Source: Rebecca billardiae RCC1528
Taxonomy: Eukaryota; Protista; Haptophyta
Reading direction: 5' to 3'
Length of the DNA: 64,000 nt
Assembly: GCA_965240325.2 (NCBI GenBank)
Contig: OZ251254.1
Span: 496,001 to 560,000, forward strand
Part shown: piece by piece, positions 1,993 to 11,766 of the stretch
Layout: each line of letters starts with the position of its first letter
How positions within the stretch are numbered: position 1 is the stretch's first letter
The notes under the pieces: model-generated
Databases searched by the model: none
Told to the model about the DNA's origin: nothing
Seen by the model: the letters and a program-made list of their open reading frames with translations, nothing else
Program-made: the position numbers and the translations under genes

Positions 1993-2706
1993 GCGGGGCG
2001 GCGGCGGGGCGTCACGGGCGGGCCCGTCGGGCCGGACGCCGGACCCCCGCCGGCGGCCGACTGTGCGCAGCGGGCCTCGCAAGCGCCCCGCGGCGTTGCC
2101 GTTGGCTGCCGCCGTCGAGGCGCCGGCGGCGCACCGCGGCTCGGCCTCCGGGCCTCGCCACTTGCAGCAGCCTGACGCTATCCCCGCCCGGCCAGGGCCC
2201 GTCCTGTGCGCTTGCCGAGGCGAGTGTCACCGCGGTGGCGCCACCTCGTGCGCGCCGAGCACGGCGCACACTCCGCATGCACCGCGCCCGTGCGCGGCGG
2301 CCATTGTTAAATTGATCGTCATCAGTCATCACCGGGCGGCGGAATTATTTTCATTAGTCGTGATGCTTTCTCATCACCGCCCGCCACGATTGCATGAACC
2401 AAATCATCCATCAAATAGGTACATGATATGAACATTCTGAGATGCAATATGGGGGTATGTAATAAAATCTAGCGCCGAGTCGCCGACTTCCCTCGATCGC
2501 GAATGATTCGAAACTACGACCCGCGCGAGATGAACCACGTGGGTATTTAAAAACGAAACAAATGCGTCCGCACTCATTGGCTGGGCGGCGACGACGCCGC
2601 GCACGCGCCCCCGCCTAAGCCAGTTAACGAGGCTCCCGGGAAAGCAGATACCCGCTGCGGTGGACACCGCCGCGGCGTTATCGTCAGGCGCGAAGGAGCG
2701 CCGCGC

Positions 2707-5700
2707 ATGGGGCCCGCGGGCGGGCCTGGCGGCGCGCCGGCGGGCGTGTCGGCCTCGCCACTCTCGCACGGCTCGCGCCACATCCCGCCGCCCTCCGCCT
2801 CGCTCGGCCTCGCCCTCGGAGGCGCGTGCGCGCTCGCTCTCGCCATCGACGTCGCAGAGGGCGGCGGGCAGCTCACGGCGAGCGCCGCGCTCGCGCTGGC
2901 GCTGTGCGCGGGCTGGCTGCTCATGGGCTGCGCCGCGTGGATCGTCCGCCCGTCCACCGCGCGCGCCGCCCGCCTGCTCGACGCCGCGTGCGCGCTGCTG
3001 CTCGCCGCGCACGGCGGCGCGTCCGCCGTGGTCGGGCACGCGCCGTTTGCGACGCCGTCCGACGGCGCGGCGCCGCTGTGGCAGCCGCTGCTCGCGCCGG
3101 CGCTGGCGTGCGCGCTCGCGCCGATGGGCCCGCGCCACCACGCCGCCGCGGCCGCCGCCCTCGTCGCCGCGCACCTCGCCGCGCACCTCGCGAGCGCGCC
3201 GCCGCCGGCGCGCGGCGCGCTCGCGCCATACATGCACGCGCTCGCGCTCGCGGCCGCGAGCGCCGCGCTCGTCGGCGCGGCGTCGGCGGTGCACGCGCGG
3301 CGGCGGGCCGAGCGGGGCGAGTCTGCCGCCGCCGTCCAGCCCGCCGCTCGCGCCCACGCCTCCGCCTCCGCCTCCGCCGAGTCGGGCGCCGCCGCGCCCA
3401 GCCTGTCGCCTGAGCACAGGATGCCGCCTCCGCCTCATCGGCCGACTCAGCGGCTCGCGGACGGCGGCGGCGCGCCCGAGGCGTCCCGCGCGACGACGGG
3501 CGGGAAGGGCGTGTGCGCCGTCGTCTCGAGCGAGGACGCGCTGTACGTCCACTCGCGCGCGGGCGCGGCCAGCGCCTCGCCCGCCGCCGGCCCAGCGCCT
3601 GGCCCGCCGCTGGCGGGCCGTGCGGCTGCGGCGGCAGCCGACGCGTCGCAGCCGCCGCCGGGCCAAGCGAGTCCGGGCGGTGGCGCGCCGGCCGCGCCCG
3701 AGGCGGACGCGGCGGCGGCGTCCGAGGAGGCGATGCGCAGCGCGCGCGCCGGGCTGATCCGCGTGGTCTGCCACGACCTGCGCACGCCGCTCCTCGCCGC
3801 CGGCTCCGCCGTCTCATCGCTGCAGGCGCTGCCCGGCCACTCCCGACTGGACGCCCCCTCGGCGGTGCGCGCGGTTTCGTCACTGTACGCGTGCACCGCG
3901 CTGATGGAGCGGATCCTGGGGGACATGCTCGACTTCGAGCGGCTCGAGGCGGGGCGGCTGCTGATGCGCTTCGAGCCGCTCCAGCTCGCGCACCTCTTCG
4001 CCGACGGCGACGCGGCTTTCTCCGGCGCCGCGGGCGCGCGCGGCGTGCGTCTCTGCGTGGAGCCACTGGAGGAGCGGCTGTGCCGACTGCAGCTGCTGGG
4101 CGACGCGCGCCGGCTGCAGCAGACGCTGAACCACGGGCTGAGCAACGCGCTCAAGTTCACGCCGCGCGGCGGGGAGGTGCGGCTGCGCGCGACGCTCGAG
4201 CGCCTCGAGCCCGCGCCACCGGACTCTGCGCTGCTGCCGAGTGGCAGCTCAGGGCGTCTGCCCAGCGTGACCCACCAGCCAGGCGCGTCGCGCGGCAGCC
4301 CGGGGCCGGCGGCGGTCGGCGGCGGCGCCACCCGGCAGCTCGACGCCGCGGCGTCGCCGGCCGACGGGCACGCGCCCGCGCCCGGCTCTCCGCCCACGCC
4401 GGGCGCGGGCGCGCAGCAGCCTCCGCAGCACATCGCACACGTGCGCGTCGAAGTGGTGGACACGGGCGCGGGCATCGGACCCGACACGCTGGAGGTGCTG
4501 CGCTCCGCCGACGCGTTCGCCGGCGGCGCGGCCGCCGCGGTGCGCGCGGGGCAGATGCAGGGGAAGGGCGGCGCGGGGCTCGGGCTCGTGGTCTCGCAGC
4601 GCATCCTGAAGCTGCACGGCAACGGCTCGTGCCTGCAGCTCCGCTCGGACGGCGTGGGGCGCGGCGCAACCTTTGAGATGCGCCTCGGCCTCCGCGAAGC
4701 GACGGGCGCCGCCCTGCAGCCGGGCCCTTTGTCGCGCGCCACTTCGTGCGCCTCGGTGGGCGCGTTTGGCGGCGGCGGCGGCGGCGGTGGCGCGGGCGGC
4801 GCGCGGCTCCACGGCGGCGCGGACCCAGGGCGCACGTCCGCCGGCAGCCGCGCTGGCTCGGTGCTCAGCCCCGAGCTGCCCGCGCCACACGGGCAGCTCG
4901 GTGCTCAGCCACATGGGCGCGGGCTGCACGGCTCAAATCGCTCGCTCGGCTCGGCCGCGGCCGCGGCCGCGCGCGCCGAGGCCGCGCCGCCGCCGCGCTC
5001 TCGGCCCATCTCCCGGCAGCCCACGCCGCCGTCGCACTCGGCCACGCCCGCGCACCTGCTCGCCGCCGGCGCCGGCGGAGGCGGCGGAGACGGCGGGCCG
5101 GTGCGGCTCGCGCGCGGCGGCTCGAACTCGTCGGCGGCGGGCGGCGGGCGCAGCTTTGGAGGCGGCGGCGGCGGCGCGTGTTCTGGTGTGCGCTCCAACC
5201 GGCCCACGCGCGGCTCGGCCGACTCCGACGCGCTGTCGGCCGGCACCGCGGCCGGCCCGCCGCTGCCGCCGGGCTTCCGCGTGCTGTACGTCGAGGACGA
5301 TCGCTTCCTGCACCTCACCTTCCCGGCGCGCGTCTTCTCGCCGCTCGGCATCAGCTACGACCTCGCGGTCGACGGCGCGGCCGCGCTGCGCATGTGCGAG
5401 GCCTCGGAGACGGAGTACGCGGCGGTGGTGATGGATAATCAGATGCCTGTGATGACGGGCGCGGCGGCGACGCGGGCGCTGCGGGAGGAGCAGGGGTACC
5501 GCGGGCTGGTGATCGGGATGACGGGCGACCCGCAGGGCTCGCAGGACCGCGACGACTTCGAGGCCTCGGGCGTGGACGTCTGCCTCGACAAGGACGTGCA
5601 GGGGATGCAGGCGGCCATCACACTTCTGCAGGAGTGCGCGCGGCGCGCGGCGGTGGACGCTGCGATCGACAAGCACATGGCGAGGCCGCTGGCGGACGGT

Positions 5701-5866
5701 GGGGCGGGGTCGGGCGAGGAGGAGGAGGAGGGGGACGAGGCGGGCGAGCTGAGCGACATCATGCGCCCGCCCGTCTCACGCTCCGCCTCGGTCTCGGCGG
5801 CGCACGCCCCGACGCCCGGCGCCTCGTGGCTGCGCGGCGCGCGCGGGGTCGCCACCGCCTCCGCCT

Positions 5867-5900
<34 letters not shown>

Positions 5901-6031
5901 GATCGGCGAGGCGGCGGCGGATGGCGGCTTGGACGGCGGCGCGTCGCCCTCCGTGGCTGGCGCGCGCGGCCCCGCGCGCGGCGCGCAGTCCGCGCCCTCC
6001 ACCTGCTCCGACGGGCGAGAGTCACAGTCGC

Positions 6032-6062
<31 letters not shown>

Positions 6063-7017
6063 GGCGGCGCTCGACATCGAAGTCGACGCGATGGTGTTTC
6101 GGCCGCAGCCGCTGCTGCTCGGCGCGCTGTTCCCGGACTTCTCGGCGGACTCGACGGCGGGGCGCGTGCGGCTGCACGGCGCGATCGACGGCTCCTGGTC
6201 CATCCTCTTCTCCCACCCGGCGGACTTCACTCCCGTCTGCACGCACGAACTCGCCACCGTCGTTCGACTCATGCCCGAGTTCAGGCGACGCGGCGTGAAG
6301 GTGCTGGCCATCTCGTGCCACGACGTGCGCACGCACCGCGCGTGGGCGCGGGACATCCTCGCGGTCGCGCGCGCGCAGCGCGCGGCCGAGCGGCTGCCGC
6401 CCACCGCCTCGCCCGCGGAGGTCGCCGCGGCGTGGGCCGCGTCGGGCGGCGCGGACGGCGGCGCGGACGCGGACGCGGCCGAGGGCGGCGGCGCGGGCGG
6501 CGGCGCCTTCCCTTTCCCGATCATCGCCGACCCGCACCGCGCGATCGCGCACAAGCTGTCGATGGTGGACCACACGATCCCGCACGACTCGCAGCCGCTC
6601 ACCTGCCGCGCCGTGTTCATCATCTCGCCCGACCGCCGGCTGCGCGCGCAGCTCCTCTACCCCGCGGTGCTCGGGCGCAACTTTGACGAAATCCTGCGCG
6701 CGGTCGACGGCCTGCAGACCACGACCGAGCACGACGGCATCGGCACGCCGGCCAACTGGACGCCCGGCGCGCAGTGCATGCTCACGCCCGCGCTGAGCGA
6801 CGAGGAGGCGAGGGCGCGGTACGGCGCCGAGCCGGCGACGCTCGAGCTGCCCTCGGGGCTCGGGTACATGCGCTGGACGGCCGACCCGGCGGTGGTGGCG
6901 CGCGTCAAGGCGGCCGAGGGGCGCGGCGGCGGCGGCGCGCCGCCGAGCGCGCCCGCGAGCAGGCACACTGGCGCCAAGGGCTCGACCGCCGCTGAGCCTG
7001 CGTCGTCGTCGTCCTGA
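2707..7017 (+). CDS. Hybrid sensor histidine kinase (hydrophobic N-terminus, HisKA, HATPase_c, receiver) fused to a C-terminal 1-Cys peroxiredoxin (Prx6 type), 1436 aa
   Basis: H-box VCHDLRTPL (His codon 3772); N-box LQQTLNHGLSNALKFTPRGG; G1 VVDTGAGI; G2 GAGLGL; receiver RVLYVEDD..VVMDNQMPVMTG..IGMTG..CLDK (about 5278-5620); Prx6 LLLGALFPDF..WSILFSHPADFTPVCTHEL..TCRAVFII..YPAVLGRNFDEILR..TPANWTPG (about 6091-6890). One uninterrupted ORF. Confidence 0.88.
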
Positions 7018-7274
7018 TGCGTGCAGCGTGGTCGCGCGCCTCGGGCGGAGCCTCGGCGGGTAGTAGCCACTACTGTAGCCGATTCAGTGTCGTACGATCG
7101 ACCACCATTCAGCAGTAGTACGTTCGTAACGACGACGCGTAACGACGAGAATAACTAGATACGCACACCACAAACAGCAAGCAGCGCGTGCGGCGTGCGC
7201 AGCAGAACCTTGGCCTCGGTTCGACGAAGCATCACCCATCCAAGCCCATCATCGTGGCGCCTTGGCTGGGCGGG

Positions 7275-9023
7275 ATGACGCCTGCTGCGGCGGGCCCGGC
7301 CTCGTCAGGCAGGACGGCCCTCCCGGCGCTGCCCGAGGCGCACGTGCACACGGAGTACCGGGATGGTCCATCCGTCGACATCGTCATCGGCGGGACGCCC
7401 GATCGCTCGCCACGCGCCGCGCACCCCAGCGCGGCATCCGCCGCGCGCGCGACGCGTGGGGCCGCTCCCGCCCCGCACGCGGCCGAGCCGCAGCCCTCGC
7501 CGCGCGGAGGCGCCCTCGCGCTGCCGCGCGTCGAGGCCACAATCACGCCGGCGCCGAGCAGCGCGCGCCGGCGCAGGGCCGATCGGCGGCACCGCACCGC
7601 GCTGCGCGCGCGCTCACCCAGCTTCGTAAGCGCGAGCGGGTCGGAGCTACTCGCCGACGACGAGGTCGACGCGCTGATCGCCGCCGTGCCCTACTTCCGC
7701 GACGCGCTGCCCGTCGAGCGCATCGCGCTGCGCGAGCAGTGCGAGCAGCTGCTCGTCGGCCGGTACGCGCGCGTCATCCGCGAGGGCGTGCCAGGCGAGC
7801 AGGCGAGCTGCTTCTTCGTCCTAGCTCGGGGCGTGGTCGAGGTCTGGAACCAGCGCGGCTTCCGGATCCGGCTGGGCGCGGGGCGCTGGTTCGGCGAGTC
7901 CGCGCTCGTCGTCTCGTCCAAGTTCCCGCGCAGCCACTCCGTCTCCGCCGCGTCCGACGCGCTGCTCCTTCGGTTCGACCAGCGGCGCCTCGCGCGCCAC
8001 CCGCAGACGAGCGTCTTGCTGCGGCGCCAGGCGGCGGCGATTGAGAATCGTATCAAGTCGAACCTGCTGCAGAGCCTCCCCTTCTTCTCCGGGCTCGCGC
8101 CGCGCGTCGTCGCCGAGATCGCGCCGCACTTCCGCTACCGGGACGCGATCGGCGGCACCGCGCTCTGCACCGAGGGCGACACCGACGCCCGGACGGCTCG
8201 GGAGATGTTTTTTATTCAGCACGGCACCGTGGGCGTGTACGTCGGTGGGCGGCAGGTGTCGGTTGTGCGGCACACGGACGAGCAGCCGTGGGTGGGCGAG
8301 CGCTCGCTCTTCATGCACGCGCCGCGCGCCGCCTCCGTGCTCTGCATCGAGCCGACGCGCGTGCTCGCGCTGCACGCGAACGCGCTCCGCCCGCTCGTGG
8401 AGGCGGTGCCGTCCATTCTGCAGCTCTTCAGGCGGCAGGATCGCTTCTACGCCGCGCAGACGCTGCGGGTGTTCGCCGAGGCGGACGCGGCGCCGCGCGC
8501 GGCGAAGGGCGGCGCGGCGCACGCCGCGCACGGCACGCCCACCAGCCCGCAGCGCCACGCGCGCGCGGACAAGTGGGAGCCGCTCAAGCGCTCCTCGCCC
8601 GCGGCGCTGCGGCGGATGGCGCGGCAGGCGACCGCGGAGCCGGTCGGCGGCGCGCCGCACGCAGAGGCGGACGCGTGGGCGGCGGGCTCGCAGGCGCGGC
8701 AGGGCGACGACGACTGGCGGCGCGCGCTCGAGCGCAACTACTTCGCGCGCCGCGCCGCCTTCGCCGACGCCAAGGCCGAGCGCGAGCGCACGCGCCGCGT
8801 CGAGCAGGAGCGCATCGAGGTGCTGGACGCCAAGCGCCGGCTCCGCACGGCCGTCGGGACGTCTCGGCGCGCGGGGTCACCGCTGGGCGGTAGCACGCCG
8901 CGGGCGCTCGGCGGCGGCAGGCTGACGACGGCCGTGTCCACGCCGGGGCTGGCCATGCCCAGCCGCGGCGGCGGCACGGTGATGGCTGCCATCGGGCGTG
9001 GCGGTGGTGTTGCCATCAGATGA
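7275..9023 (+). CDS. Protein with two tandem cyclic-nucleotide-binding domains (PKA-R/CAP-like) and low-complexity termini
   Basis: VPYFRD..VIREG..FFVLARGVVEV..GRWFGESAL..PRSHSVSA, then LQSLPFF..LCTEGD..MFFIQHGTVGV..WVGERSL..PRAASV. Start taken at ATG 7275. Confidence 0.85.
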   Translation: MTPAAAGPASSGRTALPALPEAHVHTEYRDGPSVDIVIGGTPDRSPRAAHPSAASAARATRGAAPAPHAAEPQPSPRGGALALPRVEATITPAPSSARRRRADRRHRTALRARSPSFVSASGSELLADDEVDALIAAVPYFRDALPVERIALREQCEQLLVGRYARVIREGVPGEQASCFFVLARGVVEVWNQRGFRIRLGAGRWFGESALVVSSKFPRSHSVSAASDALLLRFDQRRLARHPQTSVLLRRQAAAIENRIKSNLLQSLPFFSGLAPRVVAEIAPHFRYRDAIGGTALCTEGDTDARTAREMFFIQHGTVGVYVGGRQVSVVRHTDEQPWVGERSLFMHAPRAASVLCIEPTRVLALHANALRPLVEAVPSILQLFRRQDRFYAAQTLRVFAEADAAPRAAKGGAAHAAHGTPTSPQRHARADKWEPLKRSSPAALRRMARQATAEPVGGAPHAEADAWAAGSQARQGDDDWRRALERNYFARRAAFADAKAERERTRRVEQERIEVLDAKRRLRTAVGTSRRAGSPLGGSTPRALGGGRLTTAVSTPGLAMPSRGGGTVMAAIGRGGGVAIR

Positions 9024-9590: not shown

Positions 9591-11507
9591 TCACGCAGCA
9601 CTCGTGCCGCCATCCGCCACCGGCGCCGCAGCCGGCCGGCGCAGCACGACGACAAGCGCGCGCACCGGCTGCCCGCGGTTGAGCCGCAGCGTCGCGCGCT
9701 CGCACACGACCTCCTGCAGCCCGGCCGCGGCCGCGACGCGGCGCACGTACGCCCGGGAGTGGCCAATCCTGCCGGAGCCGAGCAGGGCGACACCCGCGCC
9801 ACCGCCGCCGCTGGGCTGGGCCGTCACGGCGGGCGCGTCGGCCTGGCCCGCGCCGGCGGCGCACGCCGCGCCCTCCGCCGCGGCCCCGTGGGCCGCTCCA
9901 TCCCCGGCCTCGCCAGCCTCGCCCCGCGCGCCGCCGCCGCCCGGCAGCTCCTCCACGGTGAAGGCGAAGAGCCCGGTCCCCGGCGTGAGCGCGCGCGCCA
10001 CCGCCTCGAATAATTCGAACAATTCGCCCACGTAAATCAACACATCCGCCGCGAGTACGAGGTCGAGGGAGGCGGGCGCGGCGGCGCGCACCGCCGCCGT
10101 CGCGTCGCCCACAGCGAGCGAGTCGTACACGCCGCGCGCGCGCGCGCGCTCGAGCATCGCCGCCGAGAGGTCCACGCCGTGCAGCACCCGGACGAGGGGG
10201 CGGAAGCTCACACCTGCCAGCCCGGTGCCACAGCCGAGGTCGAGCGCGGTGCCGAGCGCGCGCACCGACGCGCGCGCAGATAGTCCGGCCGAAAGTCCGG
10301 ACTGTCCGGAGAGTCCGGCGCTGCCGGGCTCGGCGGCGTCGGCCCCCGCCGAGGGCGCGCCCCCCCCGAGCGCGCCACGCACCGCGTCCGCCAGCAGCTC
10401 CGGCCCGCGGTACGCCAGCTCGCCGAGCAGCTGCCGGTCGAAGCCCGGCGCCTCCTGCTCAAACAAGGCGGCCACGTAAGCGCGCGGCAGGCTGGCGGTG
10501 GTGCCGTCGCCGCCGAGCAGCGTGGCGCGCTGCACGGTGGCGTGCCCGTCGGACGGCTCGAGCGCGCGCGCGGCCGTGAAGGCAGCGAGGGCGGCAAGGC
10601 GTGCGAGCGCCGCCTCCTCCGCCTCCTCCGCCGCCTCCTCCGCCACCTCCGCCGCCTCCTCCGCCGCCTCCGCCGCCTCCGCCGCCTCCGCCGCCTCCCC
10701 GCCCTCCGACCAGGGAGTGGGCGTGGCCCGCGCCGGGCTCGCCGCGCCCGCCGCGGCAGCGTGCTCACGCGCCCGCTCCGCCGCCACCGCCGCCGGGCCT
10801 GCCTCCGCCGCCTCCGCCGCCGCCGCCGCCGCCTCCGCCGCCGCCGCCGCCGCCGCCGCCGCCCGCTTCTTGAAGAACACGCCGAGGTCCGCAAAAGTCC
10901 GGGCGGAGTCCGGTGCGATCCGCAGCGACTCGAAGAAGTGGCGCGCGGCGCGCGTCGTCTCGCCCGCGTCCGAGGCGGCGACGGCGGCGAAGCGGCGGGC
11001 TTCGGCGGAGTGGGGCTCGAGCTCGGCGGCGCGCGCGAAGCTGGCGTACGCGCCGCGCGCCTCGCCGCTCGCCGCGAGCGCCGCGCCGAGCGCGTGCGCC
11101 AGCTGGGCGCACTGCGGCTCGCGCGCCGACGCGGCGCGCAGCAGCTCGACCGCCTCGCGCTCGCGGCCGTCGGCGGCGCGCAGGAGCAGCGTGGCCAGGC
11201 GCATGCTCGCGTACGCGTGCAGCTCGCCCACCTCGAGCGCCGCGCGGTACACGCCCTCCGCCTCCGCGCGCGTCTCCGGCCGGTGCTCCAGCAGCAGGCC
11301 GAGCGACCGGAGAGCGTCAGGCTCGCGCGGCGCGCGCGCGAGCACGGCGCGGAGCTCGACGATGGCGGCGTCGAGCGTGGCGTGCGGGTGCTCGGCGGCG
11401 TCCGCGTCGGCGCGCGGCTGCGCCGGGGCGTCCGCGCCCACGCACGCGAGCGCGTGCGACAGCGCGACGCACGCGAGCAGCGCGCGCGCCGCTCCAGGGG
11501 GCGACAT
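9591..11507 (-). CDS. TPR-repeat protein with C-terminal class I SAM-dependent methyltransferase (COG4976-like); N-terminal signal peptide-like segment
   Basis: TPR-like helices (DALRSLGLLL..AEGVYRAALE; LAHALGAALAASGE..FARAAELEP); YVAALFEQEAPGFD..LAYRGPELL; LDLGCGTGL; GVDLSAAMLERARARGVYD; DLVLAADVLIYVGEL; FAFTVE; GRIGHSRAYV. Likely ATG at 11507 (MSPPGAARALLACVALS). Confidence 0.87.
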   Translation of the reverse strand: MSPPGAARALLACVALSHALACVGADAPAQPRADADAAEHPHATLDAAIVELRAVLARAPREPDALRSLGLLLEHRPETRAEAEGVYRAALEVGELHAYASMRLATLLLRAADGREREAVELLRAASAREPQCAQLAHALGAALAASGEARGAYASFARAAELEPHSAEARRFAAVAASDAGETTRAARHFFESLRIAPDSARTFADLGVFFKKRAAAAAAAAAEAAAAAAEAAEAGPAAVAAERAREHAAAAGAASPARATPTPWSEGGEAAEAAEAAEAAEEAAEVAEEAAEEAEEAALARLAALAAFTAARALEPSDGHATVQRATLLGGDGTTASLPRAYVAALFEQEAPGFDRQLLGELAYRGPELLADAVRGALGGGAPSAGADAAEPGSAGLSGQSGLSAGLSARASVRALGTALDLGCGTGLAGVSFRPLVRVLHGVDLSAAMLERARARGVYDSLAVGDATAAVRAAAPASLDLVLAADVLIYVGELFELFEAVARALTPGTGLFAFTVEELPGGGGARGEAGEAGDGAAHGAAAEGAACAAGAGQADAPAVTAQPSGGGGAGVALLGSGRIGHSRAYVRRVAAAAGLQEVVCERATLRLNRGQPVRALVVVLRRPAAAPVADGGTSAA

Positions 11508-11643
11508 CCGCTTGGGCGCGGTCCATCTTGACGCCCTCGAGGGGCCCACAGCGCCGAACGCCCCTGCACGCTTCACCTCGCCGCGCGCGAGCGCGTTCAA
11601 AACGGCCTCCATCCTGAGGTCCATCCGCGGCCAGTCTTTATGC
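11488..11643 (+). repeat. 156-bp dispersed direct repeat, copy 1
   Basis: Matches 20605-20760 with 4 substitutions by manual alignment. Confidence 0.92.
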
Positions 11644-11766
11644 CGCGCCGGCCGGCGTCGGCACACCACCGGGGCGGTCCGGGCGCGTTTGTCCGGCCGC
11701 CCACGGTTTCAAGCTTTCATGGCTGCGGCCTGAGCGCAGCCCGTGCATCAGCAAGACCGGCCATCG

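Follow-up and report, generated by a model that had tools for sequence, protein, structure and literature searches.

Does the haptophyte Rebecca billardiae RCC1528 encode a histidine kinase and a peroxiredoxin in one and the same protein, and if so, what might such a protein do? The question is raised by an open reading frame (ORF) in a stretch of 64,000 nucleotides (nt) of contig OZ251254.1 (assembly GCA_965240325.2, positions 496,001 to 560,000 of the forward strand), which is called the window here and to which all positions refer. The predicted product of this ORF consists of a hybrid histidine kinase with its receiver, a low-complexity linker, and a complete 1-Cys peroxiredoxin (Prx) of the Prx6 type. 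An earlier sequence-only reading of this DNA had proposed the product as a candidate self-contained phosphorelay for H2O2. We found the fused gene to be well supported at the DNA level. So far the architecture is new on both sides: the C-terminal partner of the hybrid histidine kinase is unprecedented, and the Prx6 fusion is equally new.

Continuity of the reading frame

The ORF and the two AT-richer stretches next to it are as follows.

2707..7017, plus strand: whole ORF, 1436 codons and a stop codon in one phase
2249..2651, no strand: AT-richer intergenic dip between the preceding plus-strand gene and the ORF, minimum GC content 0.39
7032..7270, no strand: AT-richer intergenic dip ahead of the next plus-strand gene (a cyclic-nucleotide-binding protein), minimum GC content 0.48

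From its ATG start the ORF remains stop-free in a single reading phase for 1436 codons, as the earlier reading had it, whereas the other two plus-strand frames hold 18 and 5 stops over the same span; the closest in-frame stop on the 5' side lies at 2548. About one stop per 110 codons is expected at roughly 80% GC, and the full-length open frame is therefore far beyond chance, while the open linker alone (about 140 codons) is not significant at such a GC content. The GC content of third codon positions (GC3) ranged from 0.82 to 1.0 in one phase across the entire ORF and from 0.9 to 1.0 in each 60-nt window between receiver and Prx core, and it was the highest of the three codon positions in all linker windows. 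When GC content was followed in 120-nt windows, dips below 0.60 were confined to the two ends of the ORF, both of which are junctions between same-strand genes; the minimum was 0.65 within the ORF and 0.73 within the linker.

The window as a whole has 74% GC with short AT-richer intergenic stretches. For Diacronema lutheri (Pavlovales) a genome of 73.25% GC with 45% single-exon genes has been reported (PMC8379373). Composition and the nearest receiver homologues point to a haptophyte of the Pavlovophyceae type as the source of the window. Introns of the gene upstream of our ORF are GC-rich and lack codon periodicity, and they come with phase shifts between exons and with CCCTAA arrays (281-320 and 1015-1059). 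Introns of this genome can be stop-free. Neither a phase change nor a CCCTAA array was present in the ORF, and a scan of the ORF for homopolymers gave no G/C run of six or more and no A/T run of five or more. The single GC3 phase, the lack of intron marks and the restriction of GC dips to the ORF ends all argue for one continuous gene. The frame is very probably genuinely continuous in the genome.

The same observations bear on an artefact, that is, an assembly join or an indel in the (GCC)n/(GGC)n runs of the linker, or a hidden intron that ends the kinase before the Prx. Such an explanation can draw on the GC-rich introns of this genome, which can lack stops, and on two linker stretches (5843-5908 and 6025-6073) that were skipped as repeats in the read comparison. 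A related contig, L001, also supports the frame only up to an Ala-coding (GCC)n run, where it ends exactly. A random join, however, would be in frame in only one of three cases and would have to remove a 3' untranslated region, an intergenic dip and a 5' untranslated region, and both real tandem junctions nearby dip to 0.39-0.48 GC. As GC3 exceeds the GC content of the other two codon positions in each linker window, and as the ORF has neither long homopolymers nor CCCTAA arrays, we consider an artefact very unlikely.

One further feature that could be cited for an artefact is a TGA in the +1 frame at 5750, 8 nt ahead of the in-frame ATG at 5761 (Met1019). This TGA is probably a chance occurrence, the +1 frame holding 18 stops in the ORF; together with the ATG at 5761 it likely marks an old gene junction. 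A kinase ending at this TGA was rejected as implausible, as it requires an unseen frameshift and would space the two genes by 8 nt, too little to be credible for nuclear genes of this genome.

Two other comparisons were made. Run X1 (kind unknown) yielded 12 short pieces, mostly less than 95% alike, and one exact 151-nt piece at 5365-5515; apart from the exact piece these were unrelated GC-rich fragments, and the run was uninformative on continuity. Neither the full ORF nor versions from six alternative starts (including Met1019 and Met1129) had an exact match in a collection of 15 billion proteins.

Domain architecture of the predicted protein

All five Pfam domain matches were above gathering score, in agreement with the HisKA, HATPase_c, receiver and complete Prx6 domains that had been recognised from the letters, and the catalytic residues and boxes named for these domains sit exactly at the codons assigned to them. 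The kinase and receiver half is composed of the following features.

2791..3297, plus strand: Ala-rich hydrophobic N-terminal region, residues 29-197, no family match
3745..3954, plus strand: HisKA (DHp), residues 347-416, Pfam 33.2 bits versus a cutoff of 26.9
4090..4701, plus strand: ATP-binding domain (HATPase_c), residues ~462-665, with N, G1 and G2 boxes
4717..5271, plus strand: Gly/Ala/Ser/Pro-rich spacer, residues 671-855
5281..5601, plus strand: receiver domain (Response_reg, Pfam), residues 859-965

The hydrophobic N-terminus comprises three to six Ala-rich hydrophobic segments, of which only three exceed a Kyte-Doolittle threshold of 1.6. This region is probably a membrane anchor or sensor. 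In the DHp, the motif HDLRTPL begins at residue 356, the phospho-accepting His356 (codon 3772-3774), and Cys355 (codon 3769-3771) lies directly N-terminal of it. The ATP-binding domain carries its N box (NHGLSNALKF) at residue 475, its G1 box (DTGAGI) at 585 and its G2 box (GAGLGL) at 622. A low-complexity insert of about 80 amino acids (aa) between the N and G1 boxes splits the Pfam match, which covers residues 577-662 (48.8 bits versus 26.4).

The Response_reg match was marginal (30.4 bits versus a cutoff of 30.2), and the receiver residues E863/D864, D910 (codon 5434-5436), T939 and K962 are invariant in an alignment with six homologues. Three residues before the conserved Lys (K-3), at the beta5 switch position that is usually aromatic, the receiver has Cys959; Cys is also found there in five of the six homologues, and Ser in the sixth. 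Typing the receiver as intermediate or terminal by the beta5 aromatic position followed no clean rule and was not decisive. According to Pfam, the ORF holds no HPt domain and no recognised output domain besides the Prx. By its DHp, ATP-binding and receiver features the kinase-receiver half classifies as a HisKA-class hybrid histidine kinase with predicted activity.

The remainder of the protein is made up as follows.

5662..6066, plus strand: linker, residues 986-1120, with (GCC)n and (GGC)n runs
6070..6111, plus strand: conserved lead-in LDIEVDAMVFRPQP, residues 1122-1135, including Met1129 (6091-6093), from comparison with L001
6121..6648, plus strand: AhpC-TSA thioredoxin-fold core, residues 1139-1314, Pfam 78.5 bits versus a cutoff of 26
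6709..6822, plus strand: 1-cysPrx_C, residues 1335-1372, Pfam 36 bits versus a cutoff of 21.1
6907..7014, plus strand: low-complexity C-terminal tail, residues 1401-1436

The linker begins with an acidic tail that resembles the C-termini of unfused homologues. Met1019 (5761-5763) then opens an Arg/Ser/Ala-rich, presequence-like stretch, the first 48 aa of which contain four Arg and are free of acidic residues. In the Prx core, FSHPADFTPVC begins at residue 1168 and places the peroxidatic Cys1178 at codon 6238-6240, with P1171, T1175 and Cys1178 forming the PxxxTxxC motif. TCRAVF begins at residue 1299 and contains the catalytic Arg, R1301 (6607-6609). A low-complexity insert of about 45 aa within the core (6385-6516) is also found in L001.

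Compared to known Prx6 proteins (human PRDX6, PDB 1prx/5b6m; Arenicola marina PRDX6, 2v2g), the Prx part is alike in the PxxxTxxC motif, the catalytic Arg, the His of the SHP motif and the 1-cysPrx_C domain, and it is colinear with PRDX6 structures from their residue 2-3 to the C-terminus (2e-62 for 2v2g, 1e-55 for 1prx). Unlike PRDX6, it makes up the last 300 residues of a kinase of 1436 aa, bears the insert of about 45 aa behind the third helix region, and reads GSWS where PRDX6 has the lipase-type GxSxG. Its other cysteines (1204, 1300 and 1357) are Cys also in the alignment with Arenicola PRDX6, and a resolving Cys is lacking. Motif and domain criteria thus identify the C-terminal part as a full-length 1-Cys (Prx6-type) peroxiredoxin for which peroxidase activity is predicted. 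An AlphaFold2 model of the receiver-linker-Prx part, computed with no alignment, was unusable (mean predicted local distance difference test score 40).

A related peroxiredoxin with an upstream extension

A 141-aa fragment (P0046) that is 69% identical to the C-terminal half of the Prx led to contig L001 (1059 nt, JGI sample 3300016936), on which it is encoded. This contig encodes the entire Prx, with 81% identity to ours in the N-terminal half and 65% in the C-terminal half, and is AT-rich after the stop. Proteins from sister samples of the same numbering series cluster at 90% identity with an MMETSP transcript, which suggests that L001 is probably transcript-derived.

On its 5' side L001 is open and codon-periodic in frame for 74 codons ahead of its Met1129 equivalent, up to its first base, and it has AAAAIxEAxAxG and DIEVDAMVFRPQP in common with the linker of the window protein. 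Over the 8 codons before Met1129, four synonymous changes and one non-synonymous change separate the two sequences. Both species thus translate this stretch. Met1129 was ruled out as the start codon, and with it a separate Prx gene beginning there, because the upstream codons are under purifying selection relative to L001. Since the window ORF has no Met between 1019 and 1129, an ATG-initiated stand-alone Prx must begin at or before codon 1019 (nt 5761). L001, which breaks off inside the linker, is the only possible second case of the fusion, a partial and suggestive one.

Unfused homologues and origin of the fusion

Homologues of the kinase-receiver half were found in Pavlovales-type samples (L042, L046, L047, L043, L044, P0179 and P0176), with identities of 35-62% in kinase segments (35-40% in the DHp) and about 50% in the receiver. 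The closest receiver relatives came from MMETSP-type transcriptomes, P0179 being from Pavlova sp. CCMP459. Members of this family have the DHp signature RSRxIRxVxHDLRxP and the receiver signatures MDNQMP, GMTGDPxGS, FEASG and DK. Pavlovales hybrid kinases (L042, L046 and L047; P0175 from MMETSP; P0179) agree with the window protein in the DHp and receiver signatures (C/S-x-DK) but are without a Prx, and their N-terminal regions cannot be aligned with that of the window protein. Directly ahead of the phospho-His, the fused protein has Cys, whereas three unfused homologues (L042:1118, L043:1120 and L046:866) have Met.

None of the homologues carries a Prx, and they stop 20-45 residues past the DK motif. 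These homologues are ordinary hybrid kinases that would pass their phosphate on to an HPt protein encoded elsewhere. As the ORF lacks an HPt domain of its own, the term self-contained phosphorelay was an overstatement. As the unfused Pavlovales homologues end shortly after the receiver, the Prx appears to have been added to an existing kinase. In the window protein the tail after the receiver (residues ~963-1018, with an acidic run at its end) leads directly into Met1019, and what follows Met1019 resembles a targeting or N-terminal extension left over from a Prx gene that was formerly separate. In the simplest and most likely history, a hybrid kinase gene that already existed would have received at its 3' end a whole Prx6 gene, N-terminal extension included.

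Such a history leaves room for a fusion that is real in the DNA but uncoupled or young, in which a deletion or rearrangement joined two neighbouring genes and the Prx is a membrane-tethered peroxidase or is made, with a targeting sequence of its own, from an internal start (Met1019) or promoter, the long product being incidental. The architecture being a singleton, the resemblance of the segment after Met1019 to a former presequence (Arg/Ser/Ala-rich, no acidic residues) and the preceding kinase tail, which is similar in length to the C-termini of the unfused homologues, all fit this explanation, as does the fast evolution of the linker, whose codons -9 to -30 could not be aligned with L001. 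However, all catalytic residues of both halves have been kept, GC3 remains in phase across the junction, and no promoter-type AT-rich dip lies inside the ORF, whereas both flanking tandem junctions have one. Moreover, L001 has at least 74 open, codon-periodic codons 5' of the Prx core, indicating that the extension predates the split of the two species. Taken together, an uncoupled or young fusion seems unlikely.

Rarity of the architecture

The negative results of the searches in sequence collections hold for related Prx6 proteins; fusions that involve remoter Prx classes, proteins of other lengths or small clusters may have escaped them. Among proteins of 790-2513 aa in a collection of 5.8 billion clusters, the Prx region had 8 matches, none of which carries kinase or receiver domains, and the kinase-receiver region had 15 weak matches of bacterial type, none of them with a Prx. 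A HMMER search of 1.84 billion representatives with the Prx part provided the best 150 of 188 matches at E <1e-30. The ten longest among the matches listed were checked by Pfam and proved to be PAN-Prx-Prx, GST-Prx, FIST-Prx, DUF924-Prx or tandem Prx proteins, with no kinase among them.

In the ESM Atlas (clusters of at least 50 members), which was searched with the whole protein and with its receiver-Prx half, no cluster joined both modules. The clusters nearest to the receiver-Prx half were receiver-KaiB (thioredoxin-fold) proteins with a sub-threshold feature score of 0.84, which we treat as a lead only. A metagenome scan with the kinase-receiver-linker part, in a collection that does not include the sample of L001, returned 40 distant, mostly bacterial-type kinases with no Prx nearby. 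Scanning prokaryote genomes with the Prx gave three loci with no kinase within 6 kilobases, too few to carry weight. In the literature search no paper was found that describes a kinase-Prx fusion. The architecture, of which the earlier reading knew no description, was thus not met with again in the protein collections and the literature searched.

In other Prx6 fusions (carbonic-anhydrase-like-GST-Prx6 in L045, PAN-Prx6-Prx6, FIST-Prx6, DUF924-Prx6 and LIM-Prx6) the Prx6 is likewise located at or near the C-terminus. Unlike the window protein, none of these fusions has HisKA, HATPase_c or Response_reg, and the GST fusion supplies a reductant, not a signalling module.

Several proteins met in these searches are of interest by themselves. 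Many of the best Prx6 matches (P0024, P0173, P0025-P0038 and others) are tandem double Prx6 proteins, several of them with an N-terminal PAN domain. In P0041 the Prx6 is followed by about 340 further residues, and in P0092 it is fused to a FIST sensory domain. A 749-aa ORF (protein P0097) on L045:4542-7041, a genomic contig of 72% GC from Logan SRR24908224, combines a GST and a Prx6 with a domain of some 300 aa that has no annotation. Its GC3 is in phase throughout and its cluster has four near-identical members; the Prx part shows an apparent intron-like insert and a frame change near 6719-6820.

Possible function of the fused protein

Our preferred explanation, which we hold tentatively as plausible though somewhat short of probable, is a real single-exon nuclear gene that joins a membrane-anchored hybrid kinase to Prx6, with the Prx acting as a tethered peroxide sensor. 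Expression as one protein is less assured than the continuity of the frame. In the proposed mechanism, H2O2 or a lipid hydroperoxide would oxidise Cys1178 to a sulfenic acid. As a 1-Cys Prx without a resolving Cys, the protein would have to pass the oxidising equivalent of Cys1178-SOH on to another thiol, and tethering would make kinase thiols the likeliest acceptors, namely Cys355 beside His356 and Cys959 at the receiver switch. Oxidation of such a thiol would alter autophosphorylation or phosphotransfer and hence the flow of phosphate to a separate HPt protein and a response regulator. Prx6 proteins and histidine kinases both act as homodimers, and the two halves would therefore be geometrically compatible. 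A covalently wired redox relay from Prx to histidine kinase, in which Cys1178 oxidises Cys355 or another kinase or receiver thiol and peroxide is converted into His-Asp output, is possible, if doubtful.

The same fused product might be used in the opposite direction, with the Prx as output: the N-terminal region would sense, the kinase would phosphorylate Asp910, and the receiver would switch the peroxidase or Prx6-type phospholipase activity or the dimerisation of the Prx. The receiver-then-enzyme order matches response regulators with enzymatic outputs, and the ORF has no HPt or other recognised output domain. The closest known parallel in layout is found in the 2c-Cyclop/HKR proteins of green algae, which likewise combine a membrane sensor, a histidine kinase, a receiver and a C-terminal enzyme in one chain. 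In 2c-Cyclop, in-chain phosphotransfer to the receiver Asp controls the cyclase, whose activity is lost when the His or the Asp is mutated (PMC6284317). These proteins sense with a rhodopsin and end in a guanylyl cyclase, whereas the enzyme of the window protein is redox-reactive, so that the direction of the signal is ambiguous. The receiver-KaiB proteins in the nearest Atlas clusters (see above) would also be in line with an output role, again as a lead only.

Other observations speak against the Prx as output. The unfused homologues are ordinary hybrid kinases in which the receiver is presumably a phosphotransfer intermediate, the linker of about 140 low-complexity residues is long for direct allosteric control, and Cys instead of an aromatic residue at K-3 of the receiver is a weak hint against classical allosteric coupling. 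An output role thus appears somewhat unlikely, and we lean towards an input role for the Prx, in view of Cys355 versus Met in three homologues and of fission yeast, where thiol relays from a peroxiredoxin to signalling proteins and His-Asp relays that sense peroxide both exist, though as separate proteins (PMC3644883).

Several points weigh against the tethered peroxide sensor. The linker looks coding in that it has no GC dip and no intron-like stretch and keeps GC3 in phase; this earlier claim is weaker for the stretch 5767-6066, where Ala and Gly runs make every codon position GC-rich and periodicity is therefore least discriminating, and the openness of the linker by itself is not significant. 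L001 breaks in the Ala run of the linker and therefore gives no information on an upstream receiver, and the architecture is so far a singleton from one genome. Of the two candidate acceptor thiols, the argument for Cys355 consists of one substitution relative to three homologues, and Cys959 is common to most unfused homologues and hence not specific to the fusion. An internal start at Met1019, with its presequence-like stretch, could give a stand-alone and possibly organelle-targeted Prx. Finally, the order sensor-kinase-receiver-enzyme follows the layout of response regulators whose output is an enzyme, 2c-Cyclop among them (PMC6284317), which favours an output role.

Genomic neighbourhood

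Upstream of the ORF, the window begins with a plus-strand gene (1-2315) that encodes a molybdopterin cofactor-binding domain (xanthine dehydrogenase/aldehyde oxidase type); enzymes of this class can yield H2O2. The downstream neighbour on the plus strand (7188-9023) encodes two cyclic-nucleotide-binding domains and is followed on the minus strand by a TPR-methyltransferase gene (9591-11669).

Relation to known peroxide signalling

How H2O2 is converted into a specific signal is an open question, and a natural chain that contains both modules would offer a one-protein system for it. According to the leading view, the peroxide is caught by peroxiredoxins, which hand the oxidation on to signalling proteins, and engineered Prx fusions serve as peroxide probes on that principle. 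In fungi, peroxide signalling proceeds by His-Asp phosphorelays and peroxiredoxins, and peroxide sensing by the kinases is unexplained (PMC3644883). In fission yeast, H2O2 signals are carried by the Mak2/Mak3-Mpr1-Mcs4 phosphorelay and by the peroxiredoxin Tpx1 acting on Sty1, and a protein with a redox-active Cys, the GAPDH Tdh1, modulates the phosphorelay (PMC3644883). These components are separate proteins and Tpx1 is a 2-Cys Prx downstream of the relay, whereas the window protein is one chain with a 1-Cys Prx. We know of no physical link between kinase and Prx in fission yeast. The fused protein would suggest a kinase-Prx partnership to be sought in organisms where the two are separate proteins.

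If the fusion turned out to be unexpressed or uncoupled, the finding would shrink to a curiosity of a compact GC-rich genome. If the wired redox relay is true, it would for the first time link the two signalling systems physically, and might serve as a 'Rosetta stone' for kinase-Prx cross-talk in other eukaryotes.

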